Shown: positions 11,933 to 33,889 of the stretch, piece by piece
How positions within the stretch are numbered: position 1 is the first letter of the stretch
How the letters are laid out: each line of letters opens with the position of its first letter
Assembly: GCF_000737315.1 (NCBI RefSeq)
Contig: NZ_JMCB01000020.1
Location: 1-64,000, forward strand
Length of the DNA: 64,000 bases
Origin: Hyalangium minutum
GTDB taxonomy: Bacteria > Myxococcota > Myxococcia > Myxococcales > Myxococcaceae
Direction: 5' to 3'
Made by a program: the position numbers and the translations under genes
Notes under the pieces: generated by a model
What the model saw: the letters and a program-made list of their open reading frames with translations, nothing else
Database searches by the model: none
What the model was told of the DNA's origin: nothing

Positions 11933-11939
11933 GATTCCC

Positions 11940-16377: not shown

Positions 16378-16401
16378 TCCGCTCCGGCGGGCCCGTAGGA
16401 C

Positions 16402-16432
16402 CCGGGGGCTGATCGGCTCGGCCCCCGGTTTT
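16402..16432 (+). terminator. Intrinsic terminator after the DsbA gene
   Basis: CCGGGGGCTGA / TCGGCCCCCGG stem followed by TTTT. Confidence 0.7.
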
Positions 16433-16451
16433 GAGGTAGACTTCGCCGGGC

Positions 16452-16961
16452 ATGGCTCGTCGCAAGAAGCAGCCGGATGAGATGCCCGCGCGCGTGCGCA
16501 ACCTGATCGCCCTGGACGCCGCGCTGATCATGCGCCGCCTGGGCGCTCGCCGGGACGAGATGTTCGTCCTGTTCTCGCGCCTGCGCAGCCGTGAGCCCAT
16601 GCTCACCACCATCGCCACCCGCTGGAACAGCGCGACGTTCCATGACCTGGTGCACCTGCCGGAGAGTGAGCAGGCGGTGGTGCACGGCTTCCACGAGCGG
16701 CTGGACGAGATGCGCTGGTACTTCACGTACACCGAGGACATGCCCAGCACCGTCCAGCAGACCTTCACCGCCCTGTACCGGCGGCTGGAGGAGGCCTACC
16801 GGATCCTGGTGGTGGCGCTGGGGCCGCCGGTGACGCCCGATGTCGCCGTGGTGGTGGAGGCCGAGGCCGTGCGCCAGGAGGAGCCCGCCCCTTCCTCCTC
16901 CTCCTCCTCGGAAAAGGCGCTGAGCCGTCCGGTGCGCAAGCGGCACTCGCCGGCCGCCTGA
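16452..16961 (+). CDS. Hypothetical protein
   Basis: Good codon bias, GAGGT RBS-like sequence upstream, non-overlapping position. Confidence 0.8.
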   Translation: MARRKKQPDEMPARVRNLIALDAALIMRRLGARRDEMFVLFSRLRSREPMLTTIATRWNSATFHDLVHLPESEQAVVHGFHERLDEMRWYFTYTEDMPSTVQQTFTALYRRLEEAYRILVVALGPPVTPDVAVVVEAEAVRQEEPAPSSSSSSEKALSRPVRKRHSPAA

Positions 16962-17058: not shown

Positions 17059-18267
17059 TTACTTCCCCTTCTGGGGCTTCTCCGCGGGCCGCCCAGGCGC
17101 CGCACCTGGGGCTCCCGCCGGCTGCTGCTCCTGCCGCCACAGGGAGATGAGCGCCTGCTCGCGCTCCGGGGTGAGGCCCGCGCGCGGCTTGGCGCGGCGC
17201 TCCTCGGGCAGGCTGTTGAAGTACGCCAGCGTGTCCTTCACGGTGACGGGGCCCGGCCGGAACTTGAGCCCCGCCTTCAGCGCCTTGTCGATGGAGCGCA
17301 GGTGGAAGCCCTTCGTCTTCCCGATGGGCGGCGCCCAGATGGGGATGTCTCCCTCTCCGTCCTCGCCGTTCTTCGCGAGGAACTCCGAGGGCACCCACAC
17401 CAGCTTCGTGTCCGCTTTGCCTGCGGCCTCCTTGCACGCCGCCAGCAGCGCGCCCAGGGTCCACGGCTTCTCCGGGCCCGTGGCGTTGTAGACGCCGGTG
17501 AGGTTGTCCTCCATCACCTTCACCAGCCACTCGGCCAAGTCCCTCACATCGATGATCTGCAGCGGATCCTCCGGGCTGCCCGGCGCCAGCATCTCGCCAC
17601 CCTTCGTGTAGCGCACCGGCCAGTACGTGAAGCGATCCGAGCCATCCTCCGGCCCGACGATGTAGCCGGGGCGTACCAGCGCGGCCCGGTCCGGGAACGC
17701 CGCCTCTGCGGCTTCCTCGCACAGCCGCTTCAGGCCGCCAAAGTTCTCGAAGTTCTTCCCCATGGTCTCCACGGTGGGGTCGGCCAGCTTGGCGGTGGGG
17801 CCGCTCTCGTCCTCGTGGGGCACATCGTTGTTGGCGAACGCCGAGATGCTGGAGATGTAGACGTACTGCTGGACGTTGGGGGCCAGCAGCTCCGCCGAGG
17901 CCTTCACCATGCGCGGGTAGTAGCCCGAGGTGTCCAGCACCGCGTCCCACTTGCGGCCCTCGAGTGCCTTGAGGCCCTCGCCCTTCTTCGGGTCCCGGTC
18001 GCCCTGCAGCTTCTCCAGGTTGGGGAACAAGCCGGGGCGCGTCTTGCCGCGGTTGAAGAGCGTCAGCGTGTGGCCGCGCGCCTGCGCCGCGTTGACGAAG
18101 GCCGGGCCCAGGAAGCCCGTGCCGCCCAGCACGAGGATCTTCAGCTTCTTCTTCGCGGGAGGCGTGGACTTCTTCTTGTCCGGGCCGGCCAGGGCCTGGG
18201 GGCCCAGTGCCAGCAGAGAGGCTGCGGTCAGCGAGTACTGCAGGAACTTCCTGCGGGGAGTGCGCAT
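17059..18267 (-). CDS. Atypical SDR / NAD-dependent epimerase-dehydratase family protein with Tat signal
   Basis: PRRKFL twin-arginine plus ALA cleavage site; ILVLGGTGFLG Rossmann motif; FGGLK at the YxxxK position. Confidence 0.88.
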   Translation of the reverse strand: MRTPRRKFLQYSLTAASLLALGPQALAGPDKKKSTPPAKKKLKILVLGGTGFLGPAFVNAAQARGHTLTLFNRGKTRPGLFPNLEKLQGDRDPKKGEGLKALEGRKWDAVLDTSGYYPRMVKASAELLAPNVQQYVYISSISAFANNDVPHEDESGPTAKLADPTVETMGKNFENFGGLKRLCEEAAEAAFPDRAALVRPGYIVGPEDGSDRFTYWPVRYTKGGEMLAPGSPEDPLQIIDVRDLAEWLVKVMEDNLTGVYNATGPEKPWTLGALLAACKEAAGKADTKLVWVPSEFLAKNGEDGEGDIPIWAPPIGKTKGFHLRSIDKALKAGLKFRPGPVTVKDTLAYFNSLPEERRAKPRAGLTPEREQALISLWRQEQQPAGAPGAAPGRPAEKPQKGK

Positions 18268-18305: not shown

Positions 18306-19256
18306 TCACGCGCGGACGGCCGCGCGGGCGCGGAACAGCGCGACGGCGTACACCATTCCCAGCACGATGAGGCAGAGCACCCCCAGCCCCACGTGGCGGA
18401 AGATCAACGTGTCCATGCTCCAGCCGTAGGCGTCCATGAGGGTGGATGGATCGCTCGGGCCCACGCCGACGATGTGGCCGAAGGGAATGGCATCCACGTT
18501 GGTGCGGGCGCTCCACCACGTCCGGAAGGCGTCCGTGAAGGCCGCCGCGCCGATGAGGAGAAAGCCCCAGCGCGTCCAGCCCTTCCGCAGGGGATTCTCC
18601 GGGGACACGTAGAGGGTGAGCATCAGCGCGGTGCCCAGCACCAGGCAGCCGCCATCGCCTCCAAAGGTGACGAAGGACTGCGCCTTGGCGCGGCCCAGCA
18701 GCAGGGTGCCCACGCCCTGGAGCACCAGCAGCGCGAGGCCCCCTCCCATCCACCGGCGGTCGCGCAGCTTCCACCCGCGCCACGCGAGGAACCCGAAGCC
18801 CGCCGCCAGCAGGAGCGAGAAGAGGGGAGAGCGGTTCATCGCCACGGGGGTGAGCCACGGGCCCGGGAAGGCGAGGAAGCCACAGAGCCACGCGGTGACG
18901 GCGTGCCCCAGCTCGTGGATCCACATGGAGAAGAAGAGGACGAGCAGCTTGTGGCCCATCCCCGTTGCATGGAGCACCCAGGTGACGAGCAGCGCCACGG
19001 GAATGGCGAACGTGCGGATCTTCAGCTCCCACGCCGCGTCCTCCGCGGCCTCGTTCCACGTCAGCGTCTCCTGAGGCAGGTGCGCGGGGCGTTCGGGCTC
19101 GGGCAGCTCCAGAGGGGCAGGAGGCTCCACGGTGAGCGCCGCCTGGGAGGCACGGGCCTCCGCCTTGGCGTAGTAGACGCCGCACTGAGGGCACTCCGGC
19201 CCCCCGCCACGGGGAGCACCGCAGCGGGGGCAACGCGAGGGCAGGGAGCTCTCCAT
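18306..19256 (-). CDS. Integral membrane M50-like zinc metallopeptidase with N-terminal zinc ribbon
   Basis: CPRC...CPQC; WIHELGH inside hydrophobic helices; downstream SD motif. Confidence 0.7.
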   Translation of the reverse strand: MESSLPSRCPRCGAPRGGGPECPQCGVYYAKAEARASQAALTVEPPAPLELPEPERPAHLPQETLTWNEAAEDAAWELKIRTFAIPVALLVTWVLHATGMGHKLLVLFFSMWIHELGHAVTAWLCGFLAFPGPWLTPVAMNRSPLFSLLLAAGFGFLAWRGWKLRDRRWMGGGLALLVLQGVGTLLLGRAKAQSFVTFGGDGGCLVLGTALMLTLYVSPENPLRKGWTRWGFLLIGAAAFTDAFRTWWSARTNVDAIPFGHIVGVGPSDPSTLMDAYGWSMDTLIFRHVGLGVLCLIVLGMVYAVALFRARAAVRA

Positions 19257-19313: not shown

Positions 19314-22300
19314 TTACGGCGGACCCTGCGTCACGGGCGTCAGGACGAGGGGCCTTCCCCCTGAGCCCGAGCGCGCCGGAGTGCTCAGGATGGCCTGCGT
19401 GGAGAGCGTGTGGGTGGATTCGCTGCGCAGCGCGGCCGGAGCGCCCAGGTGCAGGGTCGTGCTGAACGCGGAGAAGCGGGACCACACGCCACTGTTGGGC
19501 TCGTAGAAGCCCGAGGCGCAGCTTGCCCTGCCACTGAGTGGATCCGCCTGGTAGAGCCGCGCGGTGTTGGTGGAACCCCACGGGGTGCACACGGGAGGGC
19601 CCTGCGTGGAGGCCTCGAACGAGGTCCACAGCAAGCACCCGTTGATGAGCGTGGCGGACGAGCCGGTCCGCTCGGAGCCTCGGGGATAGGCGATGTACCA
19701 GCCCTTGTCCCAGGGCGCGGCGCTCGCTTCGAGCCCGGCGGGGACCGCCCCCCCGCTGTCGAACTGCCCCACATTGACCAGCTCCGCGTCCGTGAGCAGT
19801 TGCGAGTCGAAGGCCGCCGCCTCGCTCTCCGTGTTGAACGTGCGCGAGGGGCTGCCGCCATAGCTCCACAGGCCATAGAAGCGCTGGAAGAACGGGCTCG
19901 TGGACTGGGGATAGCTGAGGGTGGCCCAGGTGTTCACCGCCTCGCGGCAGCTCCAGGTGGCCGAATCGCCGGAGCAGGCGTACTCGATTGCACCGTCGCT
20001 GCTGTTGGGGCAGCCATTCGCCGGGTCGTTGTTCCACGAGAGCCGCACGCGCGAGCCCGCGCACGAGGGGCCTGCCATGCTCTGGAAGGAGGTGGTGCTC
20101 GTCTGGGCGAAGTTCGACCAGGCCGTCCGCGTGGTGGACGCCAGGCTCCCGCCCAGCTGCACCTCGAGGGTGCTCTGCACCGCGCAGCCCTGCTCCGCAC
20201 AGGCACGTGGGTTGCCCAGGCGGCAGAGCGTCCCAGGGTCCGTGAGGTTCTGGCTGTCGCCCGTGCCGATGAAGGTGCGGAGGATGCCCGTGTCGGGCTG
20301 CACCATGTTCGTGGCGATCTGGCTGAACGGGCCGCGCAGGGCCTCGGGGCTCGTGGAGCGGCCCGCCAGGTTCGCCGCCCGGAACGCGCGCGCTGCGTAC
20401 CAGTTGCTCACCTGCCGCGTGTTGTCATCCCACTGGCCGGGCTGCCAGAAACGCACGGTCCACAACTGTCCGCCCGCGTCTCCTACCGTGGCGGTGTCGA
20501 AGAGCAGGTCCGCGCCCGGTCCGTCTCCGCGCGCCGGGCCCGCGTCCGCCAGCGCCAGCCCCGCGGTGATCGCGTAGCGCAAGTGCTGCGAGCGGCCTCG
20601 TGGAGCGTCGTGGAAGAAGCTCCATACGGTGTGGCCGTTCGCGAGGTCCACCATCGCCATGCCCCGGCCGCGCGCGTTCTGCGGATCGTATCCGCCGTTG
20701 AGCGCCACCACCCACCGCTCGCGCGCCGCGGTGTCGTTGATCTCCCAGGGCGTGACGACTCCTCTGGGCGGCAGGCCGGAGATCGCGCGCAGGGCGTCAT
20801 CCGCCGTGGGCGTGAGGGCTACCGGAGCGATGGGCGGCGGCTGCGGCGCGAAGTGAGAGAAGCTCTCGCCCACCTGGAGCGACAGCGGGTCACACGCTTG
20901 TGGCCACATCCACAGGAAGTCTCCGGGCATGTCGGGGCGCCGCGCCGCCGCTTCTCCGGGAAGCTGTCCGAGCATGCGCGTCAGGTCGAGCGCGAAGCGG
21001 TGAACGCCGCCGCGGCCCGTGCCGATGACCGCCACGGTGCGGTACTCCTGCCACTGCTTGATGCCATCGGCCGGCTGCCCCTCCACACCATCGAGCCACA
21101 CGTCGCGCACCATGGCGGTGCCATCCATGAGGAGGGCGTGCTCGCCCAGATGGGCCTTCATCCGAGGCAGCACGTCCGGCGGGATGAACGCCCACAGCTC
21201 CTGGCCGGTGCCCGCGTCGTAGAGGGCCTGGCCGGTGGCGGAGTCCCTGCCGGTGCTCCGGCCATTGAGGAAGGCGTGGAGCATGCCGCCGTTGGAGCCC
21301 ACGAGGACGACCTTGTCCCGGTCCCCGGCCTCGTAGGCGTACGTGTCGTAGGCGTCCGCCGTTCCCGGCTGGCCCGGCACGGTGTAGCCGCCCTGCAGCG
21401 GAGTGGCGCCGCTGAAGAGCGCGGGCAGGCACTGGGGCGAGCCGTCACACGAGGACTTCGGCTGCGGCGGCTCCACGCTGATGGGCGCGGAGTGGAGGAT
21501 GTCCTGCAGCAGGAAGGGCCGGTCATAGCCGCGCAGGGCCGGATCCGGGTTGAGGGCATCCGCGCCTCGGTACCAGCGGATGATGACGCGGGCGCAGTCG
21601 TCCGGCGTCAGCGAGGCGACGCCCAGCGTCGCGGCCAGGTCCAGGCAGCCCTTGGGGTACTGGCTGATGCCCAGGTACTCGCGGAGCAGGGGCGCATTGG
21701 CCTCGGTGAACGCCACCGGCGTGTCCTGGCGGTCGAGCTTCCCGTCTCCATTGCTGTCGATGAGGGTGAAGATGTTGCGGATCTGCCACCGGTTCGTCTG
21801 TCCCGTGGAGGGCTTGAGCACCTGGCCCGCCTCCCAGAAGGGCCGCGCGGGAATCGACGGGGTGATCTCCTTGATGAACTGCCCCGACGTGTCCTCCCTC
21901 ACCCCATCCCCATCGGCATCCACCAGGAGCGTGTCGTCACAGTCTCCGTCGAAGTTGCGATCGCCTCCGGCCGCCGGGTTGAGCGGATTGCACCCGAGCT
22001 GCCGCTCCTCCACGAGCTGGAAGCGGTAGAGGGCGCCCTTCCACGGAGCCTTGGGGTTCGGCGAGACGGTGAGACGCGGCACGAGTGCGGAGGCGGGCTG
22101 GACCGCCAGTGGGCCGCTCACGGTGGAGGGAGCCAAACCCGCGGCGCGCGTCTGCGCGGCGCCTGGCACGCTGAGGAGCTCGTACAGGGCCTGCCGCAGG
22201 CCGCCTCCGTCATTCACGCTGGAGTAGAGGCCACCGCCTACCTCCGCCGTGTGCTGGAGGAAGTTGCTCTGGAAGCCGAGCGCGATGGTGTGGATGGTCA

Positions 22301-23645
22301 GGCTCTGTCGGCCGCTGGTATCGAACTCGCCAACGATGGGCGGATTGTTGCTCTGCAGGTCCCAGTTGTGGAGGAACTGGGCCACGTCATCCAGGTAGTA
22401 GTTGGGATTGTCGTCCGTGGTGCTGCTGGCGTTGCTCCCCTTGTCGCGGCCCGCAGGGGTTCCCGAGCCGCACGGCGCGGAGTCTGGGCAGTACACCGGG
22501 CCGCCGTTGATCGCGCGGAACCGGGTGAGCAGTGCGGAGGCAAAGGTGTCGCCGGTAGGCTCACCGTCCGAGATGATGACCACCGAGGTGCCCTGGCAGC
22601 CCCAACACACGCTGCGGTTGGGCGAAGAGAGCGCCTCGTTGCGGAAGGTGGTCGGGTAGCTGTAGTTGCCGCCGAACCCGAGCATGTTCCGGTACACCGT
22701 GTCACTCGAGCTGAAGTAGTACCCGAGGTTCAGCAATGCGCGTGCCAGCGGCGTGCCCGTGGTGAAGGTCAGTGAGTTGAGGGCGTTGATGTAGCTGGCG
22801 CGCTGTGAATCGAAGGCGATCGGGTCCTGGACGATGGCGGAGCACGAGGGAGCCTGTGCCTTGAGCAGCACGGAGTTGGGGGTGTTGTTGCTGAAGTGGC
22901 TCAGGCCCACGCGCAGGCGGCGCACGTCTTTGAGGAGCGACTTGAGCACCGCCTTGAGGGTGACGTACTTGGGCGGGTTGAAGTTGAGGTAGCGGCCCCA
23001 GAAGATGAAGTCGGGGTTCTCCAGCGGCGGCGCGTCGCGGCCGGGAGCGCCCGGCACCTTGTAGTAGCCCTTGGTGCTCAGGCACGTGAGGCAGCGGAAG
23101 TACTCGGCGGCGTTGGAGGTGTTCCAGTTGGGCACCTGCGACTGGCAGGCCTGCTCCCTGGACGTCCACTGCGGCGGCGGGTTGGTCAGGTCCGCCCAGT
23201 ACATGTAGCCGTAGAACTTGTTGTCCTGGAACAGGTTGGGGAAGCCCGTGTCCGAGCCCAGCCCCGTGCCTACGTCCGGCGGCGGGTATTGGATGCTCGG
23301 GTTCCACCCCCGGCTGGTGGCGAACGCATCCAGCCGCGGGTTCTCGCAGCCGTTCACGGTGATGCTGAAGAACTCCGAGTGGGTGCTGTTGACGACCTGG
23401 GGCAGCTCGCGCATCGAGCTCGAGGTGTCGATGAGGATGTGGAGGTTGGCCGGCGTGCCGTCCGAGAGCATGCGCTCCTCGGCGGACTCATCCTTGCCGT
23501 ACACCACGTCCTGAATGAGCGCGGTGGTGAGCTGGCAGCACGCCGGGCTGTCGGTGAAGCTCCCGAGCTGCGCGGAGGCACTCCCCGCGAAGCCCCACAG
23601 CACCAGGCCAAGGCCATAGCGAATCATCTGAAGTCTCTTTTCCAT
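19314..23645 (-). CDS. pilY1: PilC/PilY1-family type IV pilus adhesin (vWA plus beta-propeller), copy A
   Basis: Signal peptide; MIDAS DTSSS...TPLA...SDGEP; Ca-loop DSNGDGKLD; LVGSNGGMLHAF, GQELWAFIP, DGTAMVRDVW; start 23645 or 23627. Confidence 0.85.
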   Translation of the reverse strand: MEKRLQMIRYGLGLVLWGFAGSASAQLGSFTDSPACCQLTTALIQDVVYGKDESAEERMLSDGTPANLHILIDTSSSMRELPQVVNSTHSEFFSITVNGCENPRLDAFATSRGWNPSIQYPPPDVGTGLGSDTGFPNLFQDNKFYGYMYWADLTNPPPQWTSREQACQSQVPNWNTSNAAEYFRCLTCLSTKGYYKVPGAPGRDAPPLENPDFIFWGRYLNFNPPKYVTLKAVLKSLLKDVRRLRVGLSHFSNNTPNSVLLKAQAPSCSAIVQDPIAFDSQRASYINALNSLTFTTGTPLARALLNLGYYFSSSDTVYRNMLGFGGNYSYPTTFRNEALSSPNRSVCWGCQGTSVVIISDGEPTGDTFASALLTRFRAINGGPVYCPDSAPCGSGTPAGRDKGSNASSTTDDNPNYYLDDVAQFLHNWDLQSNNPPIVGEFDTSGRQSLTIHTIALGFQSNFLQHTAEVGGGLYSSVNDGGGLRQALYELLSVPGAAQTRAAGLAPSTVSGPLAVQPASALVPRLTVSPNPKAPWKGALYRFQLVEERQLGCNPLNPAAGGDRNFDGDCDDTLLVDADGDGVREDTSGQFIKEITPSIPARPFWEAGQVLKPSTGQTNRWQIRNIFTLIDSNGDGKLDRQDTPVAFTEANAPLLREYLGISQYPKGCLDLAATLGVASLTPDDCARVIIRWYRGADALNPDPALRGYDRPFLLQDILHSAPISVEPPQPKSSCDGSPQCLPALFSGATPLQGGYTVPGQPGTADAYDTYAYEAGDRDKVVLVGSNGGMLHAFLNGRSTGRDSATGQALYDAGTGQELWAFIPPDVLPRMKAHLGEHALLMDGTAMVRDVWLDGVEGQPADGIKQWQEYRTVAVIGTGRGGVHRFALDLTRMLGQLPGEAAARRPDMPGDFLWMWPQACDPLSLQVGESFSHFAPQPPPIAPVALTPTADDALRAISGLPPRGVVTPWEINDTAARERWVVALNGGYDPQNARGRGMAMVDLANGHTVWSFFHDAPRGRSQHLRYAITAGLALADAGPARGDGPGADLLFDTATVGDAGGQLWTVRFWQPGQWDDNTRQVSNWYAARAFRAANLAGRSTSPEALRGPFSQIATNMVQPDTGILRTFIGTGDSQNLTDPGTLCRLGNPRACAEQGCAVQSTLEVQLGGSLASTTRTAWSNFAQTSTTSFQSMAGPSCAGSRVRLSWNNDPANGCPNSSDGAIEYACSGDSATWSCREAVNTWATLSYPQSTSPFFQRFYGLWSYGGSPSRTFNTESEAAAFDSQLLTDAELVNVGQFDSGGAVPAGLEASAAPWDKGWYIAYPRGSERTGSSATLINGCLLWTSFEASTQGPPVCTPWGSTNTARLYQADPLSGRASCASGFYEPNSGVWSRFSAFSTTLHLGAPAALRSESTHTLSTQAILSTPARSGSGGRPLVLTPVTQGPP

Positions 23646-23662
23646 GGGCGCTGGGCTCGTGA

Positions 23663-26600
23663 TCAGGGAAGAGGAATGGAGAGGGGCATGGCGCGGCTCG
23701 GCTCCTGGCCGAGCGCGCCGTACGCGTTGTCGCCCCAGGCCCAGACGGTGCCGTCGGTGCGCACAGCCAGGGAGTGGAAGGTTCCCGCCTCCACGGCGGT
23801 CACGCCCGTGAGGATCTGCACGGGCGACGAGCGCGGGGTGATGGTCCCGTCTCCCAGCTCGCCAATGAAATTGATGCCCCAGGCCCACAGGGTGCCGTCG
23901 GTCTTCAGGGCCATGAAGAAGCCGTCGCCCCGGGCGACTTGCTGCACCGCCGAGAGGCCTTGGATCTGCAGCGGGACGGAGCCAGGAGGGTGTGTCCCAT
24001 CCCAGGGCGCGTCCAGGAAGCTGTTGCCCCATCCCCACACCGTGCCATCGCTCTTCAGGGCCAACATGCTGCTGCCGCCCGCGGTGATCTGGATGACGTC
24101 CGTGAGCCCCAGCACCGGGCCGGCCGTCGGGCGGTTCGTCCGCGTCCCATCCCCGAGCTGGCCCCAGATGTTGGTGCCCCAGGTCCACACCGTTCCATCG
24201 GCGCGCAGGGCTGCGGAGAAATCCCAGCCCGTGGTGACGTCCACCCCGCTCGTGAGCCCCGGTACCTGCGAGGGTAGGGGATGCGCCTCCTGATCCATCG
24301 TCCCGTTGCCCAGCTGGCCATGGCTGTTGTTGCCCCAGGCCCAGACGGAGCCATCCTCGAGCACCGCCAGGGTGTGGCGCCCCTCGGCCTCCATGGCCTT
24401 CACGTTCGCGAGGCTCGCGACTCGGACGGGCGCCTCTTCCTGGAGGCGCGACCCGATTCCGAGCTGGCCGTACAAGTTGGTGCCCCAGGCCCACAGCGTC
24501 TTGTCGCTTCGCAAGGCCAGGGTGTGCCCGTCTCCGGTCGTGACGGACTGGACGCTGTCCAGGCTGGGCACGGGCGCGGGCGTGCCGCGGCTGAAGGTGG
24601 TGCCGTCGCCGAGCTGCCCCGAGGTATTCCATCCCCAGGTCCAAAGGCGCCCATCCAGGCCCACGCTCGCGGAGACGCCGTCCCACGCCGCCAGGGCCCT
24701 CTGGCCAGTGAGGCCCGGCACCTGCGTGGGGGACACCTGGGCACCGGTGCCAACGCCGAGCTGGCCCCGGCCCGTGTCGCCCCAGCCCCAGAAGGTGCCG
24801 CTGGTGTCCACCGCGATCGTGTGCCTCCAGTTCGAGGCGAGGGCGGTGATGGCCGGCAGCCCGGGAATCTGCACGGGGAAGTACGTGGAGCTCCCAGGGC
24901 CCAGCTGGGCGTGCACGTTGTCTCCCAGGCCCCAGACGGAGCCATCCGCGAGCAGGATCAGCGAGTGCCTCTCGCCCGCCGCGACGGCCGCCGCACCCGT
25001 GAAGTTCGGCAGCTGCGTGGGCAGGGAGGCATGGCCGATCATTCCGAGTTGCCAGGCCTGATTGCTGCCCCACCCCCAGACAGTGCCGTCCTCGAGCACC
25101 GCCAGGCTGTGGGACTCGCCCGCGGACAGCGCTCGGACATTCGCCAGGCCGGGCACCTGCACGGGGATGCTGCGGGGGGCAGTCGTCCCATCGCCGAGCT
25201 GGGTGTTCGCGTTGTTGCCCCAGGCCCAGGCGGTGCCATCGGCGCGCACCGCCAGCGTGTGGCCGATGCCCGCCGACACCGAGACGATGCTCGAGAGGCC
25301 CACCACTTGCACCGGTGTGAATGCGGAGCTCGTCGTTCCATTGCCGAGCTGGCCGTACAGGTTGTCGCCCCAGGCCCAAGCGGTGCCGTCGGAGCGCACC
25401 GCCAGCGAGAAGCCGAAGCCCGCCGCGATGGCCACGGCATTCGTGAGGCCCAGCACCTGCTCCGGGGTGGTCTGGAAGGTCCCCGCTCCATTCCCCAGCT
25501 GCCCCGAGAACCCGTCGCCCCAGGCCCAGACGGTGCCATCGGAGCGCAAGGCCAAGGAGTGGTTGTAGCCCGCCGCGACCGCCTGGATGTTCGTGAGGTC
25601 CGCTACCTGCACCGGCGTGTTCCGAGGCAGATAGGTCCCATCCCCCACCTGGCCGCGGTCGTTGAGGCCCATGGCCCACACGGTGCCGTCACTGCGCACC
25701 ACGAGCGAGTGCTCCAGTCCCGTGGCGCTCCGGACGACCCGCTGGACGAGCGGAGGCGTGGACTGAGGCCACCCGCCGTGCACGATGATGGGGATGACGC
25801 TAAAGGCCAAGCCCGTGCTCTCGCCGAGCTGACCCTGCCCATTGTCGCCCCAGGCCTGGAGCGTGCCGTCGGAGGACGAGGACAGCGCGTGGGCGTAGCC
25901 CGCCGTCACGGACACGATGTTCGAGCCGGACGCGATCAGCACGGGCGAGGTGCGCGTGGCGCGCGACCCTTCGCCGAGCTGGCCGGTGCTGTTGTCGCCC
26001 CAGGCGTAGACGTCCCCGGTGGCCGTCACCGCCAGCGAGAAGGCGCCACCGGCCGCGATGGAGACCACCTGCGACAGGCCGAACACCGGCGCGGGAGGAC
26101 GGGAGGGGTAGAGCGAGCCATCGCCGAGCTGGCCGGTGGTGTTGGCACCCCAGGTCCAGACAGTGCCGTCCTCGAGCAGGGCGAGGCTGTGGCGGCCACC
26201 CGCGGCCACTGCCTTCACACCATGGACCGAGGGGATCCAGTCCGGGGTGTAGCGGTTGAGGGGCGCGGCGCTGCCCAACTGGCCATGGACGTTCTCGCCC
26301 CAGGACCACACCCCGCCGTCGCGGGTCACCGCGAGCGAGTGAGCCCGGCCCGCCGCGATGCTCACCGCGCCCATGAGGGGGACCTTCACGGGGGTGGCGC
26401 GCTGGAGGTTCGACCCATCGCCGAGCTGGCCCGAGCCGTTGAAGCCCCAGGCCCAGAGGGTGCCGTCCTGGCCCAGGGCCAGCGAGTGCTCATACCCGGC
26501 GGCCACGGCGCGCACCTTGGGGAGCCCCAGCACCTGCACGGGGCTGACGCGGCGGGCGAGGGTGCCGTCTCCGAGCTGGCCGTAGCGGTTGTCGCCCCAG

Positions 26601-26956
26601 GCCCAGACGGTGCCATCCTCGAGGACGGCGAGGCTGTGGCGCGCCCCAGCCGCCACCGTCACCACGTGCTCCAGCCCGGGCACCTGCGCGGGCGTGGTGT
26701 GGCTGCTCAGCGTCGCGTCGCCGAGCTGGCCAAAGGTGTTGTCACCCCAGGCCCACAGGGCTCCGTTCAGCGCCACATATAAGGAGTGTTGGTAGCCCGC
26801 GGCCATGCGCGGCGGTGGTGGCGGCGGCAAGGCCGGCGGCGAGGGCTTGCCCCAGGAGGGCCCCGGCATCCCCGCGGCGGCGGAGCTGGTGATGAGCCAG
26901 AGACCCAGGAGTCCCACCCACGCGCCCCTCGCCCTGACTGCGCTCGCTATCCGCAT
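23663..26956 (-). CDS. Secreted RCC1-repeat protein with 21 repeats (three 7-bladed propellers)
   Basis: 21 counted DGT.WAWG.N..GQLG units, with a linker after repeat 7; N-terminal signal and Pro-rich spacer. Confidence 0.92.
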   Translation of the reverse strand: MRIASAVRARGAWVGLLGLWLITSSAAAGMPGPSWGKPSPPALPPPPPPRMAAGYQHSLYVALNGALWAWGDNTFGQLGDATLSSHTTPAQVPGLEHVVTVAAGARHSLAVLEDGTVWAWGDNRYGQLGDGTLARRVSPVQVLGLPKVRAVAAGYEHSLALGQDGTLWAWGFNGSGQLGDGSNLQRATPVKVPLMGAVSIAAGRAHSLAVTRDGGVWSWGENVHGQLGSAAPLNRYTPDWIPSVHGVKAVAAGGRHSLALLEDGTVWTWGANTTGQLGDGSLYPSRPPAPVFGLSQVVSIAAGGAFSLAVTATGDVYAWGDNSTGQLGEGSRATRTSPVLIASGSNIVSVTAGYAHALSSSSDGTLQAWGDNGQGQLGESTGLAFSVIPIIVHGGWPQSTPPLVQRVVRSATGLEHSLVVRSDGTVWAMGLNDRGQVGDGTYLPRNTPVQVADLTNIQAVAAGYNHSLALRSDGTVWAWGDGFSGQLGNGAGTFQTTPEQVLGLTNAVAIAAGFGFSLAVRSDGTAWAWGDNLYGQLGNGTTSSAFTPVQVVGLSSIVSVSAGIGHTLAVRADGTAWAWGNNANTQLGDGTTAPRSIPVQVPGLANVRALSAGESHSLAVLEDGTVWGWGSNQAWQLGMIGHASLPTQLPNFTGAAAVAAGERHSLILLADGSVWGLGDNVHAQLGPGSSTYFPVQIPGLPAITALASNWRHTIAVDTSGTFWGWGDTGRGQLGVGTGAQVSPTQVPGLTGQRALAAWDGVSASVGLDGRLWTWGWNTSGQLGDGTTFSRGTPAPVPSLDSVQSVTTGDGHTLALRSDKTLWAWGTNLYGQLGIGSRLQEEAPVRVASLANVKAMEAEGRHTLAVLEDGSVWAWGNNSHGQLGNGTMDQEAHPLPSQVPGLTSGVDVTTGWDFSAALRADGTVWTWGTNIWGQLGDGTRTNRPTAGPVLGLTDVIQITAGGSSMLALKSDGTVWGWGNSFLDAPWDGTHPPGSVPLQIQGLSAVQQVARGDGFFMALKTDGTLWAWGINFIGELGDGTITPRSSPVQILTGVTAVEAGTFHSLAVRTDGTVWAWGDNAYGALGQEPSRAMPLSIPLP

Positions 26957-27104
26957 GTATCCCCCGTGGAAGACGCGGGGGATTCCCTACCACGATTTGT
27001 TCAGTTTTCAGCAAGGCCTGGCCCTCGCACTCACTCTGTGGAGGGCTCGACCGGGGGGGGAAGCCGTCCGGTCGAGCCCCTCGTGGAGCAAGGGGGGAGG
27101 CGAA

Positions 27105-30100
27105 TCAGGGAGTGCTCTGCGTTACCGGCACCGAGCGGAACGGCGTGCCGTTCGAGGATGCGCTCGGCGGCGTGTTCAGCAGCGCGCGGTGGTACAGCTG
27201 GCCGTTGTACTGCGTGTGCTGCGGAGCCGGCGCTCCCAGGTTCACGCTCGTGCCCGTGGGGAAGTAGCGCGACCACGTGCTGGTGGTGACGTCGTAGAAC
27301 CCCGTGGCGCAGCTCGCCCGGCCGCTGACAGGGCTCGCCTGATAGAGCCGCGAGATGTGGGTGCCCTGGGTCGAGCACACGGTGGCACTCTGGCTCGAGG
27401 GCTCGAAGGAGCTCCACAGCAGGCACCCGTCGATAAAGGTCGCGGGCGAGCCCGTCCGCTCGTTGGCGGAGGTATAGGGGATGTACCAGCCCGGAGACGT
27501 GGGAGAGGCCTCCAGCTCCGAGCCGGTCACCACGCGGCCCGCGCTGTCGAACTGCCCCACGTTCAGCAGGCTCGAGTCCGTGATCATGTTGAAGTCGAAG
27601 TTCTGCGCCTCCGCCTCGCTGTCGAACGTGCGCCAGGGGCTGCCTCCGTAGCTCCACACGCCATAGAAGCGCTGGGTGGAGAAGGTGGCCTGCTGGGTGA
27701 AGTTGAGGGTCACCCAGCTATCCACCGTCGTGCGGCAGCTCCAGGTGGAGGAGGTGCCGTCACAGGTGTACTCAAGGGCACCGTCATAGCCGTTGCTGCA
27801 GCCGTTCGCGGCGTCGTTGTCCCACGTGAGCTTCACCTTCGAGGACGCACAGCTGCCGTACGCTGGGGCCTGGCTGGAGGCGGTGCTCGCCAGCGAGTAG
27901 TTGGCGTAGGTCGTCGAGGCCGTGGACGCCAGCATGCCGCCGCGCTGCACCTCGAGGGTGGCGCGGGCCGTGCAGCCCTGCTCCGCGCAGGCGCGCGGGT
28001 TGCCCATGCGGCAGCGCGTGCCCGTGTCGTAGAGGTTCTGGCTGTCGCCGGTGCCGATGAAGGTGCGCAGGATGCCCATGTCGGGCTGCACCACGTTCGT
28101 GGCGATCTGGCTGAACGGGCTGCGCAGGGCCTCGGCGCTCCCGGAGCGGCCCGCGAGGTTCTCCGTCCGGAACGCGCGCGCCGCGTACCAGTTGTTCACC
28201 CGCTGCGTGGCGGCATCCCACTGGCCGGGCTTCCAGAAGCGCACGGCCCAGAGCTGCCCGCCGTAGTCGCCCACCGTGGCGGTGTCGAAGAGCCCATCGT
28301 TCTCCACCCCGGAGCCGTACGCCTGGCCCACGTCCGCCAGCGCCAAGCCCGCGCCCATGGAATAGCGCAGGTACGACGAGCGGCCCTGGTTGTCCCCGTT
28401 GAAGAAGCTCCACACGGTGTGGCCGCTGGCGAGGTCCACCACCGCCATGCCCCGGCCGCGGTTGTTGTACGGATCATAGCCTCCGTTCAGGGCCACCACC
28501 CAGCGCTCGCGGGCCGCGGTGCCGGAGACCATCCAAGGCGTCTCCGCCATGCCCGAGGGCTGGCCGTTGCGCACGCGCAGGGCGTCGTCCGCGCCGGGCG
28601 TCAGCGCCACCGGGCCGATGGGGGGCGACAGCGGCGCGAAGTTCGAGAAGCTCTCGCCCACCTGGAGCGCCAGCGGATCGCACGGCTGGGGCCACATCCA
28701 CAGGAAGTCTCCCTGCTGGTCGGGCGCGCGCGTCACCGCCTCGCCGGTGGCCTGGCCGAGCAGGCGCGTCAGGTCCAGCGCGAAGCGGTGCACGCCGCCA
28801 CGGCCCGTGCCGATGACCGCCACGGTGCGGTACTCCTCCCACTGCTTGCGGCCGTCCGAGGGGCCCCCGACGCCGTCGAGCCACACGTCGCGCACCATGG
28901 CGGTGCCATTCACGAGGGGGGCGTGCTTGTCGAGGTTCCCCTTCAGCCGAGGCAGCGTGTCCGGAGGGATGAAGGCCCACAGCTCCTGGCCCGTGCCCGC
29001 GTCGTACAGGCCCCGGCCCGTGGCGGGGTCCCTGCCAGTGCTCCGGCCATTGAGGAAGGCGTGGAGCATGCCGCCGTTGGAGCCCACGAGGACGACCTTG
29101 TCCCGGCCTCCTGCCGCGTCCACGTACTTGTCATACGCGTCTCCCGTGCCAGGGACTGTCTGCAGGGGGTAGCCCGTCTCCAGCGCCGTGGCGCCCTGGA
29201 AGAGCGTCGGCAGACACTGAGGGGAGAGGGCGCACGAGTCCTTGGGCAGCGGCGGCTCCACGTTGATGGGCGTGGAGTGGGCCAGGTCCTGGAGCAGGGA
29301 GGCCCGGTCGTAGTCGCGCAGGGCCGGATCCGGGTTGAGGGCATCCGCGCCTCGGTACCAGCGGATGATGACGCGGGCGCAGTCGTCTGGAGTCAGGGAG
29401 ACGAACCCCAGCTTCGTGGCCAGATCCGCGCAGCCGGTCGGGTTCTGGCTGATGCCCAGGTACTCGCGCAGGAAGGACGCGTTGGCCTCGGTGAAGGCGA
29501 TGGGCGTGTCGCGCTGATCCAGCTTTCCATCCCTGTTGCTGTCGATGAGCGTGTAGATGCTGCGGGTCCGCCACTTCTGCGAGCTGCCGGCCTTGAGCAC
29601 CTGTCCCGCCTCCCAGAAGGGCACGGCCGGGGTCCACGGCGAGAGGGTCTTCACGAAGGTGCCTGGGAGGGTCTCCGTCACGGCATCCCCCTGGGCATCC
29701 AGCAGGACCGTGTCATCGCAGTCGCCATCAGCGTTGAGGTCTCCGTAGTACGGGGAGAGCGGGTCGCACCCGAGCAGCAGCTCCTCGGCGAGCTGGAAGC
29801 GGTAGAGCGCCCCCTGCCACGGGGTGTTGGGGGGCACGGAGGCCCGCAGGCGCGGCACGAGCGCGGAGGCGGGCTGGCCCGCGGGCACGGTCTCCGTGGT
29901 GGAGGGCACGGCGTTGGCCTTCCACGCGGTGGTGTTGGGCGTGGAGGGGACGTTGACGAGCGAGTCGCGGAGGGCCTGCGACAGGCTCGCCGCATCATCC
30001 GCGATGTAATAGAGGCCGCCTCCCACCTCGGCGGTGTGCCGCAACAGGTTGCTGTTGATGCCGAAGCCCACCGTGTACGTCGCCACGCTCTGCTTGCCCG

Positions 30101-31412
30101 CGGTGTTGAAGTCCCCGACGATGGGCGGCGTGCTGCGCTGCAGGTCCTGCTCGTAGAGCAGCTTGGCCACGTCATCGAGCAAGTAGTTCGGGTTGTCGTC
30201 CGTGTAGACGGTGGGGTTGGAGCCCTTGTCACGTTCAGCGAGGGTGCCCGGGCCGCAGGGCATGGAGTCCGGGCAGTAGACCGGGCCGTTGTTGAGCGTG
30301 CGCAGCTTGGTGACCACCGTGCTGCTCAGCGTGTCGCTGTTGGGCTCGCCGTCCGAGATGATGATGACGGAGGTGGTTTGGCAGCCCCAGCACACGCTGC
30401 GGTTCTGCGAGCTGAGCGCGGAGTTCTTGAAAGCGGACGGGTAGCTGAAGCCGGTGCCAAAGCCAAACACGTCCCGGTACACGGTGTCATCCGACGTGAA
30501 GTAATAGCCCACGTTGAGCAGCGAGCGGGCCAGCGGCGTACCCGTGTTGAACGCCAGGGTGTTGATCGCGTTGATGTAGCTGGCGCGGCTGCTGTCGAAC
30601 GCGCTCGAGTCAGTGACGACCTGCTGGCACGAGGGATTCTGCGTCCGGAGCATCACGGTGTTCGGCGCGGAGGAGGAGAAGTAGCTGAGGCCCACGCGGG
30701 CGCCGCGCACGTCCTTGAGGAGCGACTTGAGCACTGCCTTGAGGGTGACGTACTTGGGCGGGTTGAAGTTGAGGTAGCGGCCCCAGAAGATGAAGTTGAG
30801 GTTCTCCAGCGGAGCCGTGTTGCGGCCAACGGTGCCCGGCACCTTGTAGTAGCCCTTGGTGCTCAGGCACGTGAGGCAGCGGAAGTACTCGCTGGCGCCG
30901 GTGGTGGACCAGTTGGCCACCCGGCTCTGGCAGACCTGCTCCTTGGAGTCCCACTGCGAGGGCGGGTTGCTCAGGTCCGCCCAGTACAGGTAGCCGTAGA
31001 ACTTGTTGTCCTGGAACAGGTTGGGGAAGCCCGTGTCCGAGCCCAGCCCCGTGCCTAAGTCCGGCGGCGGGTAACGGAAGTTCGGGTCCCACCCCCGGCT
31101 GGCCGCGAACGCATCCAGCCGCGGGTTCTCGCACCCGTTCACCGTGAGGTTGAAGAAGGCGGTGTGGTCGCTGTTCGTCACCTGCGGCAGCTCGCGCATG
31201 GAGCCCGAGTTGTCGATCAGGATGTGGAGGTTGGCCGGCGTGCTGGCCGGGAGCGCGCGCTCATCGCCTGGCGCGTCCTTGCCGTACACCACGTCCTGGA
31301 TAAGGGACGTGGTGAGCTGACAGCAGGCGGGACTGTCGGTGGAACTGCCAAGTTGCGCTGACGCGGGGCCCACGGCCGCCAGCAGCACTAGAACCAGGCA
31401 CAGGCGCTTCAT
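27105..31412 (-). CDS. pilY1: PilC/PilY1-family type IV pilus adhesin (vWA plus beta-propeller), copy B
   Basis: MKRLCLVLVLLAAVGPASA signal; MIDAS DNSGS...TPLA...SDGEP; DSNRDGKLD; collinear paralogue of copy A. Confidence 0.85.
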   Translation of the reverse strand: MKRLCLVLVLLAAVGPASAQLGSSTDSPACCQLTTSLIQDVVYGKDAPGDERALPASTPANLHILIDNSGSMRELPQVTNSDHTAFFNLTVNGCENPRLDAFAASRGWDPNFRYPPPDLGTGLGSDTGFPNLFQDNKFYGYLYWADLSNPPSQWDSKEQVCQSRVANWSTTGASEYFRCLTCLSTKGYYKVPGTVGRNTAPLENLNFIFWGRYLNFNPPKYVTLKAVLKSLLKDVRGARVGLSYFSSSAPNTVMLRTQNPSCQQVVTDSSAFDSSRASYINAINTLAFNTGTPLARSLLNVGYYFTSDDTVYRDVFGFGTGFSYPSAFKNSALSSQNRSVCWGCQTTSVIIISDGEPNSDTLSSTVVTKLRTLNNGPVYCPDSMPCGPGTLAERDKGSNPTVYTDDNPNYLLDDVAKLLYEQDLQRSTPPIVGDFNTAGKQSVATYTVGFGINSNLLRHTAEVGGGLYYIADDAASLSQALRDSLVNVPSTPNTTAWKANAVPSTTETVPAGQPASALVPRLRASVPPNTPWQGALYRFQLAEELLLGCDPLSPYYGDLNADGDCDDTVLLDAQGDAVTETLPGTFVKTLSPWTPAVPFWEAGQVLKAGSSQKWRTRSIYTLIDSNRDGKLDQRDTPIAFTEANASFLREYLGISQNPTGCADLATKLGFVSLTPDDCARVIIRWYRGADALNPDPALRDYDRASLLQDLAHSTPINVEPPLPKDSCALSPQCLPTLFQGATALETGYPLQTVPGTGDAYDKYVDAAGGRDKVVLVGSNGGMLHAFLNGRSTGRDPATGRGLYDAGTGQELWAFIPPDTLPRLKGNLDKHAPLVNGTAMVRDVWLDGVGGPSDGRKQWEEYRTVAVIGTGRGGVHRFALDLTRLLGQATGEAVTRAPDQQGDFLWMWPQPCDPLALQVGESFSNFAPLSPPIGPVALTPGADDALRVRNGQPSGMAETPWMVSGTAARERWVVALNGGYDPYNNRGRGMAVVDLASGHTVWSFFNGDNQGRSSYLRYSMGAGLALADVGQAYGSGVENDGLFDTATVGDYGGQLWAVRFWKPGQWDAATQRVNNWYAARAFRTENLAGRSGSAEALRSPFSQIATNVVQPDMGILRTFIGTGDSQNLYDTGTRCRMGNPRACAEQGCTARATLEVQRGGMLASTASTTYANYSLASTASSQAPAYGSCASSKVKLTWDNDAANGCSNGYDGALEYTCDGTSSTWSCRTTVDSWVTLNFTQQATFSTQRFYGVWSYGGSPWRTFDSEAEAQNFDFNMITDSSLLNVGQFDSAGRVVTGSELEASPTSPGWYIPYTSANERTGSPATFIDGCLLWSSFEPSSQSATVCSTQGTHISRLYQASPVSGRASCATGFYDVTTSTWSRYFPTGTSVNLGAPAPQHTQYNGQLYHRALLNTPPSASSNGTPFRSVPVTQSTP

Positions 31413-33856: not shown

Positions 33857-33889
33857 CGAGGGCTTCACCCCCTACCTTGGGAGCCATGG

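Follow-up and report, generated by a model that had tools for sequence, protein, structure and literature searches.

Tail-less PilY1-family proteins unlinked to minor pilins, and a neighbouring secreted RCC1 protein, in Hyalangium minutum

Introduction

The DNA analyzed here, a 64 kb stretch of contig NZ_JMCB01000020.1 of Hyalangium minutum (the window), carries two PilY1-family genes on either side of a gene for a secreted RCC1 protein, and raises the question of whether such PilY1 proteins serve as pilus-tip adhesins on minor pilins made elsewhere or act in a complex independent of the pilus, the two options put forward in a preliminary description of the locus.

In Mahanta et al. (2026; PMC13190605), unlinked pilY1 genes and several paralogues per genome are described for Myxococcota (several PilY1 sets per genome being the norm), Hyalangium and Stigmatella PilY1 proteins are assigned to clade 1.5, with a domain architecture stated to resemble clade 1.3 closely, and the C-terminal domain is treated as the conserved anchoring part. 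Being solitary and present as multiple paralogues, the genes of the window resemble those described there; the word "orphan" in the preliminary description thus holds as regards linkage but names a situation already known there as "unlinked pilY1". A search of that text returned no RCC1 neighbour and no tandem arrays, and the word "truncated" once, for a Neisseria PilC1 construct, with no natural loss of the C-terminal strand.

Organization of the locus

The three genes lie on the minus strand in the order pilY1-B, R, pilY1-A (Table 1) and all three ORFs are intact, which bears out the preliminary picture of two paralogues of about 1440 aa flanking a secreted RCC1 gene on one strand; the spacer between the R stop and the A ATG, given there as 17 bp, measures exactly 17 nt. 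Sec-type signal peptides can be read at the N-termini of A, B and R. The GC3 of the B and R frames (0.90–0.93 in a window of 69% GC) indicates that these are real coding frames; the long ORF of A was absent from the list of that screen. The longest ORF containing B starts further out, at GTG 31454, and a second possible ATG of A, at 23627, corresponds to the 1437-aa database form.

Prepilin genes were sought in the 64 kb window by a strict G-F-T-L-x-E scan, by a relaxed scan omitting the Glu and by tblastn, for which ORFs from the minor-pilin clusters of four related loci were the queries; none was found by any of the three, in agreement with the earlier view of these paralogues as unlinked to minor pilins.

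Table 1. Coordinates of genes and features in the window
Feature	Position	Strand	Remarks
pilY1-B	27105-31412	-	1435 aa from ATG 31412; PilY1-family, tail-less
B MIDAS DNSGS	31200-31214	-	
B EF-hand-like Ca sites (n=2)	29715-29741 and 29517-29543	-	
Hairpin, 13-bp, GC-rich	27042-27080	-	in 148-nt B-R spacer, 25 nt past B stop
R	23663-26956	-	1097 aa, secreted, ~21 RCC1 blades
R Pro-rich linker	26807-26839		
pilY1-A	19314-23645	-	1443 aa; PilY1-family, tail-less
A signal peptide	23571-23645	-	
A MIDAS DTSSS	23415-23429	-	vWA domain
A SDGEPT	22554-22571	-	vWA domain
A Ca motif DRNFDGDCD	21936-21962	-	
A Ca motif DSNGDGKLD	21732-21758	-	
A PilY1 propeller segment DTATVGDAGGQLW	20460-20498	-	
A C-terminus RPLVLTPVTQGPP	19317-19355	-	followed by stop
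Downstream gene	18306-19256	-	316 aa, same strand as A

A and B as PilY1-family proteins

Searches of A and B against Pfam and NCBIfam give no significant match (PF05567 at E=0.92 on A, none on B), and by Pfam alone the PilC propeller would be judged missing, but this is overruled by profile and fold. A 12-sequence family profile matches the C-terminal domain of Pseudomonas aeruginosa PilY1 (3HX6, E 1.6e-5), the same structure is the top Foldseek match (E 3e-16) of the AF2 model of A 690-1443 (pLDDT 87.8), and the model of A 27-700 matches vWA domains. The reading of A and B as an N-terminal vWA(MIDAS) domain joined to a PilY1 beta-propeller, already proposed from the letters, is therefore correct on the family profile and the AlphaFold/Foldseek comparisons. 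B is likewise made up of a signal peptide, a vWA domain with MIDAS, two EF-hand-like calcium sites and the propeller. Throughout the family the MIDAS DxSxS and TDGEP motifs do not vary, and A and B contain 28 and 29 cysteines; the two share 67% identity, with divergence even along their length and no sign of recent gene conversion.

Most of the 80 homologues found are labelled PilY/PilY1 by their source. A Myxococcus PilC/PilY protein shows 30% identity to A over 93% of the length of A, and the M. xanthus locus L049 aligns to A 22-1374 and ends in ...LQNVYELP...CRH, the PilY1.3 strand. A resembles M. xanthus PilY1.3 in its Sec signal, large N-terminal vWA domain with MIDAS, C-terminal PilY1 propeller and Cys-rich body of ~1450 aa (30% identity, nearly full length). 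The dN/dS values of A (0.41–0.53) and R (0.57–0.71) lie above the range of the flanking genes (0.19–0.44) and below 1, so that both proteins are fast-evolving yet constrained; with intact ORFs and invariant motifs, both look functional.

Loss of the C-terminal tail

PilY1.3 is encoded with fimU3-pilV3-pilW3-pilX3 and ends in LQNVYELP...CRH...C, of which residues 1444-1451 (LQNVYELP) are modelled as a strand added to the PilX3 sheet (PMC11046646); A and B, in contrast, are unlinked to pilins and lack this tail. B ends in ...TPFRSVPVTQSTP before its stop, and in C-terminal alignments A ends ~25–30 residues ahead of the ...KSLYQLELDxxxHxCRHxxxxC of tailed homologues. A strand-plus-Cys-loop tail, [YW]x[LM]x[LVP]..HxCRH..C, is retained by ~70 complete homologues (Myxococcus, Archangium, Vitiosangium, Anaeromyxobacter and others) and is absent from 23 full-length proteins, namely A, B and 21 relatives from Hyalangium and Stigmatella, which form one clade and share the ending P-[LF]-x-S-[VLI]-P-V-[ST]-(EGP)-P. 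No remnant of the tail occurs downstream of A or B in any frame.

All minor-pilin-linked homologues keep the tail, as do the unlinked members of the ~70 (L003-L005, L008, L016, L028), and prepilin ORFs number zero at every tail-less locus examined and 2–3 upstream at most tail-bearing ones. Tail-less pilY1 genes are often tandemly duplicated, with three copies in S. aurantiaca DW4/3-1. H. versicolor has tail-less (L002), tailed unlinked (L004) and tailed linked (L006) copies, and canonical tail-bearing, pilin-linked PilY1 also occurs in H. gracile and S. aurantiaca. The loss of the tail in the lineage of A and B is a new point.

In N. gonorrhoeae and A. baylyi, piliation and tip association are both lost when the C-terminal strand is removed (Ellison et al. 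2026 preprint, PMC12918778), and the tail-less clade resembles a natural counterpart of these engineered PilC1/PilY1 delta-C-beta mutants. The mutants are loss-of-function alleles of a sole PilY1, whereas the natural truncation is old and conserved, affects accessory paralogues and comes with a new conserved terminus. Since their lineage lacks the tail that normally anchors PilY1, A and B are probably not ordinary pilus-tip adhesins. The new C-terminus is well conserved and predicted to form a beta-strand (model strand 744-752, pLDDT ~65-82) with a superficial resemblance to the PilY1.1 strand SKVLIYAP (PMC11046646); it could be a substitute docking strand, so that loss of the tail falls short of proving loss of pilus anchoring. 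In tailed proteins the matching segment is present, poorly conserved and upstream of their real strand. A and B keep the whole beta-propeller, another presumed point of contact with the minor-pilin complex.

The RCC1 protein and its pairing with pilY1

R matches PF25390 (E=0), PF00415 (19 stretches) and PF13540 (20 stretches), and its blade period of 50 aa gives about 21 blades, or three 7-bladed propellers, as anticipated in the preliminary description. Apart from its signal peptide and Pro-rich linker, the whole protein is RCC1 blades. Over 3400 RCC1 proteins match R with E<1e-100; the list is dominated by multidomain proteins, unlike the R type of signal peptide and 21 blades alone.

The RCC1-pilY1 linkage also occurs outside this strain. 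On seven further contigs of all different sequence (L001, L080, L081, L082, L084/85 and L086) an RCC1 gene of the R type lies directly upstream of an orthologous pilY1, on the same strand and ~16–82 nt away, with identities of 53–81% for RCC1 and 60–79% for PilY1. The pair is found in two or more flanking-gene contexts, that of L082 being entirely different and that of L085 differing upstream. The recurrence of the pair, itself a new point, makes a dedicated partnership of R with A a reasonable reading of gene adjacency, and the lack of a PilY1 neighbour at all of 80 other metagenomic RCC1 loci argues that the pairing is specific. RCC1 is not obligatory for a tail-less PilY1, because the syntenic site in H. 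versicolor and H. gracile holds one pilY1 and no RCC1, and RCC1 is likewise absent from the tail-less Stigmatella arrays; all tail-less loci of Stigmatella and of the P0012 group lack it. The full B-R-A order was found in this window only, the conserved unit being R-A.

No PilY1-RCC1 module was found in the literature searched, as the preliminary description had supposed, and pairing with RCC1 is a difference from M. xanthus PilY1.3. The only link between an RCC1 propeller and a T4P tip component in that literature is PilX2 of Saccharibacteria TM7x, which resembles a minor pilin and bears an RCC1 propeller of seven blades (PMC11623550). In that case a T4P locus encodes the propeller and the pilin-like part as one fusion, whereas R is separate, secreted, 21-bladed and devoid of a pilin helix. 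A precedent for a periplasmic accessory beside pilY1 is TfcP of M. xanthus, a non-canonical cytochrome c whose gene accompanies that of PilY1.3 and which stimulates PilY1 calcium binding (Herfurth et al. 2022, PMC8833165), but TfcP is small and belongs to a minor-pilin cluster, and R is a 1097-aa triple propeller beside an unlinked, tail-less PilY1.

Possible function and alternative explanations

With about even confidence we read the locus as that of a PilY1 lineage freed from canonical tip anchoring and paired with a dedicated RCC1 protein. A and B would be diverged copies of a Hyalangium/Stigmatella-specific lineage that left the minor-pilin operon and shed the strand-plus-disulfide-loop tail clamping canonical PilY1 onto the PilX minor pilin; in the Hyalangium sub-lineage the tail-less PilY1 would be co-transcribed with the three-propeller R, and B would be an additional paralogue upstream, followed by a terminator-like hairpin of its own. 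Going by the signal peptides, all three proteins would be exported by Sec, and A and B, rich in cysteines, may fold oxidatively and keep a head for metal-dependent ligand binding. This head, a vWA domain whose MIDAS is intact together with two Dx(D/N)xDGxxD calcium sites, has conserved motifs and a presumed activity. Because the PilX-docking tail is missing, neither would be stably mounted at the pilus tip or license assembly in the canonical way, to judge from sequence and from the published models and experiments. As their conserved adjacency suggests, A and R may form an extracytoplasmic binding or sensing complex, either pilus-independent or one that the pilus machine handles only in passing, and pilus priming would fall to a canonical tail-bearing, pilin-linked PilY1 elsewhere in the genome, as relatives suggest. 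Against this reading stands the need for an unanchored protein of 150 kDa to pass through the outer membrane.

Use of A and B as alternative tips in trans, with the new C-terminus (P-L-V-S-V-P-V-S/T-P) docking on PilX and RCC1 as a TfcP-like accessory, is rather unlikely in our estimate, although much in the data is compatible with it: the whole PilY1 architecture is kept, the new terminus is conserved and strand-like, minor-pilin clusters such as that of L006 could be shared, multiple PilY1 sets per genome are usual (PMC13190605), and the existence of tail-bearing unlinked copies makes use in trans plausible in the genus. Those very copies, like the rest of the ~70 other homologues, have nevertheless held on to the tail, which is cleanly deleted in exactly the clade never found beside pilins; the segment proposed to replace it is poorly conserved where the real strand follows it, and strand deletion abolishes function in two model species. 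Unlinked PilY1 and RCC1 linkage thus stand from the earlier interpretation, interchangeable tip adhesins are disfavoured for want of the docking tail, and its second option, a pilus-independent complex, would fit better.

It is improbable that RCC1 is a passenger, one of the many RCC1 genes of myxobacterial genomes, which entered the upstream position a single time in an ancestor of Hyalangium and was then inherited vertically, with no functional tie, beside a PilY1 that works alone. The two genes stay together at identities as low as 53% for RCC1 and 60–62% for PilY1; the pairing also outlasts a change of surroundings on both sides (L082) or only upstream (L085), the genes being closely spaced on one strand, and involves an RCC1 type unlike the prevailing multidomain homologues, against which stand the RCC1-free tail-less loci noted above, the lack of an RCC1 gene for B (upstream of B the adjoining gene, at 31597, is divergent) and the commonness of the fold. 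Decay of A and B as redundant duplicates that lost the tail by truncation and are drifting to pseudogenes is very improbable and largely refuted: raised dN/dS relative to neighbouring genes and the failure of Pfam to recognise A and B would suit it, but the reading frames run unbroken for 1.4 kaa, 23 proteins of two or more genera share one truncation point and terminal motif, the MIDAS and calcium motifs and the cysteines are conserved, dN/dS is below 1 and AF2 models of high confidence point to a coherent fold.

Other features of the locus

The B-R spacer has a predicted RNA fold of -67.5 kcal/mol (z = -3.1 vs shuffles) and its hairpin, after which the sequence has no T-run, is probably a terminator or attenuator setting B apart from the R-A unit. 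The gene downstream of A encodes a membrane protein that carries a zinc-ribbon-like CxxC...CxxC motif at its N-terminus as well as an HELGH motif, and gave no match in a Pfam search. A homologue follows pilY1 at L080, L081, L002 and L083 and is absent at L001, L084 and L086; the gene may be co-transcribed with the tail-less pilY1.

In pilus priming, adhesion and surface sensing, PilY1/PilC proteins play a central part. A C-terminal strand of about 10 residues has recently been proposed both to license assembly and to anchor the adhesin under load. The PilY1 paralogues A and B of Hyalangium minutum belong to a conserved and expanding clade from which exactly that strand has been deleted, which has left the minor-pilin operon and which in one sub-lineage has a fixed RCC1 partner, represented here by the secreted propeller protein R.

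Gene Organization

The window has a GC content of 69%, and real reading frames were picked by a third-position GC screen. The genes of A, R and B lie on one strand, and 17 nt, counted in the sequence, separate the R stop from the A start, the same spacing that the preliminary description had reported. An alternative start of A (ATG 23627) gives 1437 aa, the form in the database copy P0001. From its 148-nt spacer with a hairpin, which was noticed by eye and has no T-run, B looks like a transcription unit apart from R-A; a promoter and terminator consensus scan gave no match above chance. The membrane protein encoded after pilY1-A, which is also kept after pilY1 in L080, L081, L002 and L083, carries an N-terminal zinc-ribbon-like motif (CPRCG...CPQCG, CxxC...CxxC) and a metalloprotease-like HELGH motif.

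Coordinates of features in the window and in homologous loci from other genomes and metagenomes
Feature	Sequence	Position	Strand	Length	Remarks
B (pilY1-B)	window	27105-31412	minus	1435 aa	
Hairpin	window	27042-27080		13 bp	GC-rich; B-R spacer, 25 nt past B stop; fold energy z = -3.1
R (RCC1)	window	23663-26956	minus	1097 aa	
A (pilY1-A)	window	19314-23645	minus	1443 aa	
Membrane protein	window	18306-19256	minus	316 aa	57 nt past pilY1-A; no Pfam match
NAD-epimerase-like gene	window	17059-18267			next after membrane protein gene
Two DsbA-like thioredoxin domains	window	14746-16377	plus		synteny kept in L001, L002, L083, L084
DUF1549/DUF1553, DUF1501, PSCyt1 trio	window	33857-38478	plus		
DUF4215 protein	window	41525-44407	minus	960 aa	Cys-rich repeats
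Ser/Thr kinase-nSTAND1 NTPase fusion	window	45359-48496	minus		PF20703, E 1e-114
Second RCC1 gene	L081	5891-7078			58% identical to R N-terminus
NADase_transloc gene	L083 (H. gracile)	12366-13043		225 aa	PF25302 match
Kelch-type multi-propeller protein	L087	13353-16658		1101 aa	P0012 group
Three tandem tail-less pilY1	L168 (S. aurantiaca DW4/3-1, CP002271)	3613-16643			
Two tandem tail-less pilY1	L170 (Stigmatella sp. ncwal1)	3549-12254			

A and B as PilY1-Family Proteins

The PilY1 identity first proposed for A and B holds despite a Pfam miss. Single-sequence searches of Pfam, NCBIfam and PDB sequences with either protein gave nothing significant: PF05567 reached E 0.92 with A and did not match B, and the PDB search returned only EF-hand noise. 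The same Pfam model matches 4 of 12 family members (best 1.7e-6), and a profile of the 12 sequences matches the C-terminal domain of P. aeruginosa PilY1 (3HX6) with E 1.6e-5 over three collinear stretches, the GDxxGxLW loop among them. For the AlphaFold2 (AF2) model of A 690-1443 (pLDDT 87.8, pTM 0.91), Foldseek ranks 3HX6 first (E 3e-16; TM 0.62-0.66, target-normalised), and the model of A 27-700 (pLDDT 80) matches vWA domains, including those of the SpaC pilus adhesin and LapA (vWFA). The homologue search returned 80 proteins of Hyalangium, Stigmatella and Archangium, mostly named PilY or PilY1; a Myxococcus PilC/PilY protein among the homologues shares 30% identity over 93% of A. A and B are thus members of the PilY1 family by fold and descent, with a PilY1-type beta-propeller that profile and fold recover and Pfam alone does not. 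Two family features tied to function, the C-terminal docking strand and minor-pilin linkage, are missing from both.

Sec-type signal peptides, as read from the sequence, open A, B and R; those of A (MEKRLQMIRYGLGLVLWGFAGSASA/QLG) and B (MKRLCLVLVLLAAVGPASA/QLG) are of type I and not prepilin leaders. The MIDAS residues (DxSxS and TDGEP) are kept family-wide, as is the calcium motif Dx(D/N)xDGxxD, of which A (562-570, 630-638) and B each have two exact copies, both preceding the propeller; the P. aeruginosa D851-D859 loop aligns with a degenerate site. A and B share 67% identity, with divergence spread evenly along their length. No recent gene conversion between them was found: identity in 60-aa windows ranges from 37 to 88% and includes no near-identical block. 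P0077, a 797-aa protein from a Myxococcaceae MAG annotated as DUF6081, is 60% identical to about 31% of A and is possibly a fusion or fragment with part of the PilY1 N-terminal region.

The closest characterised relative of A and B is M. xanthus PilY1.3. In a 2026 survey, clade 1.5 comprises Hyalangium/Stigmatella orthologues with a vWFA plus propeller architecture and a median of about 30 cysteines, and unlinked pilY1 genes, apart from minor-pilin genes, are described for Myxococcota (Mahanta et al., 2026; PMC13190605). A and B fall in this clade on the basis of their nearest named relatives (Hyalangium/Stigmatella PilY, 50-68% identity), their vWA and propeller folds and their cysteine counts (28 and 29, respectively). 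Since clade 1.5 and unlinked pilY1 genes are already published, orphan status by itself is not new; the interest of the locus stems largely from tail loss, not from the orphan status that the preliminary description stressed.

Loss of the C-Terminal Tail

About 70 complete homologues end in a tail, a strand followed by a Cys-loop element, that reads ...(K/Q)S(L/V)YQ(L/I)ELDxxxHxCRHxxxxC in C-terminal alignments. Tail-bearing proteins span 28-60% identity and occur in Myxococcus, Archangium, Vitiosangium, Anaeromyxobacter, Pyxidicoccus, Citreicoccus and Hyalangium; the M. xanthus homologue L049 ends ...LQNVYELPLTQEQHTCRH...C. The tail is homologous to LQNVYELP of PilY1.3 (residues 1444-1451), modelled as a beta-strand that joins the PilX3 sheet (Treuner-Lange et al., 2024; PMC11046646), and in N. 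gonorrhoeae and A. baylyi piliation and tip association are both lost once the C-terminal strand is deleted (Ellison et al., 2026, preprint; PMC12918778).

A, B and a further 21 full-length proteins have no such tail and end 25-30 residues sooner, at a conserved terminus of the form P-[LF]-x-S-[VLI]-P-V-[ST]-(EGP)-P; the tail-borne C-terminal beta-strand (C-beta), which in the family complements the sheet of PilX/PilK, is missing from A and B, though the new terminus may substitute for it. An origin of the tail loss as a frameshift or annotation artefact is rejected, since no tail remnant occurs in any frame downstream of A or B and the same end point is found in 23 proteins. The tail-less proteins fall into one clade of three groups, namely the Hyalangium proteins associated with RCC1, a sister group from metagenomes that includes P0012 and its relatives, and a Stigmatella group. 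Their genes are often in tandem, with three copies in S. aurantiaca DW4/3-1, two in Stigmatella sp. ncwal1 and two in the window. The Stigmatella paralogues share 59-70% mutual identity; their arrays have no RCC1 or prepilin genes within 8 kb and are preceded by a LytTR two-component pair and a glycosyltransferase. Tailed copies persist in genomes that have tail-less ones, as in H. versicolor, where L002 is tail-less, L004 tailed and unlinked, and L006 tailed and linked.

In the P0012 group, a large Kelch-type protein is encoded convergently to a tail-less pilY1 (L087), so that a propeller of a repeat family other than RCC1 also adjoins the clade.

Absence of Linked Prepilin Genes

The window was said at the outset to lack minor-pilin genes, and three tests agree: no prepilin was found in the 64 kb by a strict motif scan, by a relaxed scan allowing PilX-like leaders without Glu5, or by tblastn with ORFs taken from four related minor-pilin clusters. 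Among 30 further window genes annotated with Pfam, none is for a pilus or secretion function. The scan of representative genomes yielded 79 pilY1-homologue loci. Most have the classic arrangement, in which 2-3 same-strand prepilin ORFs lie 2-3.5 kb upstream of pilY1. Tail-bearing proteins are of both linked and unlinked kinds, and none of the tail-less loci examined has prepilins. Among these loci the clade-wide tail deletion is perfectly associated with unlinked status.

A second kind of unlinked pilY1, which keeps the tail (YQLELD..HxCRH..C), occurs in Hyalangium/Archangiaceae (L003, L004, L005, L008, L016 and L028) as a monocistronic gene flanked by a divergent gene (about 715-750 aa) and a convergent one (about 360 aa). 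The use of minor pilins in trans by tip adhesins, earlier suggested for A and B, has better candidates in these tail-bearing proteins.

The RCC1 Protein and its Pairing with PilY1

R matches PF25390 (E=0, 6 stretches), PF00415 (19 stretches) and PF13540 (20 stretches). It shows the tandem blades of about 50 aa and the W-x-W-G-x-N-x-x-G-Q-L-G signature of RCC1 repeats; from 17 strict motif matches spaced 48-52 aa, with degenerate blades added, a period of 50 aa and about 21 blades are counted, which would correspond to three 7-bladed propellers. Beyond these R has a Pro-rich linker and no other domain. Its C-terminus (...TPISIVLP) was considered as a C-beta-like docking strand and rejected, as the last RCC1 blade has its regular TPVQVxGL strand there.

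Linkage of the two families is not peculiar to this strain: an R-type gene lies directly upstream of an A-type gene on the same strand in several other loci, and the R-A adjacency is thus conserved.

Loci with an R-type gene directly upstream of an A-type gene (RCC1 identity measured to R, PilY1 identity to A)
Locus	Source	RCC1	PilY1	Gap	Remarks
L001	Hyalangium sp. MAG	~61% (C-terminal fragment only)	68%	~53 nt or less	RCC1 cut by contig end
L080	JGI metagenome	81%	79%	16 nt	RCC1 cut at contig end
L081	JGI metagenome	C-terminal fragment only	75%	17 nt	second RCC1 gene further downstream
L082	JGI metagenome	53%	62%	82 nt	flanking genes completely different
L084/L085	JGI/NCBI	54-55%	60%	22 nt	L085 upstream flank different
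L086	JGI metagenome	56%	64%	31 nt	RCC1 full-length, 1070 aa

The B-R-A triple was seen in the window only. In H. versicolor (L002) and H. gracile (L083) both flanks are syntenic with those in the window (one with DsbA-like, PDZ/CarboxypepD_reg and epimerase-like genes, the other with DUF1549/1553 and DUF1501 genes), and each species has a single pilY1 and no RCC1 there. A neighbour-joining tree places the RCC1-paired PilY1 proteins in one clade with A, B and the two Hyalangium proteins encoded without RCC1; in the simplest history RCC1 is gained at the base of this clade and lost once in the versicolor/gracile branch, and B arises from a later duplication. As a caveat to the partnership, tail-less PilY1 does without RCC1 in Stigmatella and in these two Hyalangium species. 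As a negative control, none of 80 unrelated metagenomic RCC1 loci has PilY1 neighbours. The metagenome scan with R found generic RCC1 proteins only (at most 49% identity in the best segment), and a large R homologue search was dominated by long multi-repeat RCC1 proteins, with even known orthologues missing from the list.

In L081, downstream of the RCC1-pilY1 pair and past the homologue of the 316-aa membrane protein, a second RCC1 gene begins, at which the contig stops; this organism may carry another RCC1(-pilY1?) unit. In H. gracile the single tail-less pilY1 is directly followed by a gene with an NADase_transloc match that is absent from the window.

NG86 dN/dS ratios, which are only indicative as codon bias with GC3 above 0.9 lowers dS, are 0.41-0.53 for A, 0.57-0.71 for R and 0.19-0.44 for flanking genes used as controls. 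The A and R genes evolve faster than their neighbours, yet are constrained, a pattern that, rough as the ratios are, fits exposed binding proteins.

No report of a separate RCC1 protein tied to PilY1 was found in the literature searched, and the searched text of the 2026 PilY1 survey mentions neither RCC1, tandem arrays nor natural tail loss. The nearest analogies are TfcP, an accessory protein encoded with PilY1.3 (PMC8833165) as R is beside pilY1-A, and a Saccharibacteria RCC1 propeller fused to a PilX-like protein (PMC11623550), whereas in the window RCC1 is a separate protein.

Possible Roles of the Tail-less Proteins

Tail-less PilY1 would no longer be clamped on PilX and would then have no canonical role as priming factor or tip adhesin. 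In Hyalangium, R may be its partner, the two forming an extracytoplasmic, metal-dependent binding or sensing complex. The main caveat to lost anchoring is the new C-terminus, which is conserved and strand-like in the AF2 model and alignments and could be a replacement docking strand. It is possible, if doubtful, that tail-less PilY1 has been exapted off the pilus tip, alone in Stigmatella and with a dedicated triple-RCC1 propeller in Hyalangium, either as a free secreted or surface vWA/Ca2+ complex or as cargo that the pilus machine expels, as a type II secretion system does its substrates, with no retention at the tip. If true, such exaptation would put the C-beta licensing model to a natural test and give bacterial RCC1 propellers a new role.

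The clade looks like a natural counterpart of the engineered delta-C-beta mutants (PMC12918778) and, as a natural experiment, may have either of two outcomes: the strand model has an alternative solution in the new ...PVSP terminus, or myxobacteria put PilY1 scaffolds to a second use that is independent of the pilus. The question is directly testable in S. aurantiaca DW4/3-1, which is cultured and has a complete genome and three tandem tail-less genes. Labels such as 'pilus assembly protein PilY' on tail-less genes may overstate what is known of them.

Other Genes of the Window

The protein with two DsbA-like domains is a possible oxidative-folding helper for the Cys-rich PilY1 proteins, or may reflect mere shared synteny. 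The trio with PSCyt1 (Planctomycete cytochrome c) is common to H. versicolor and H. gracile. Besides the DUF4215 protein and the kinase-nSTAND1 fusion, several further kinases and histidine kinases are dispersed across the window.
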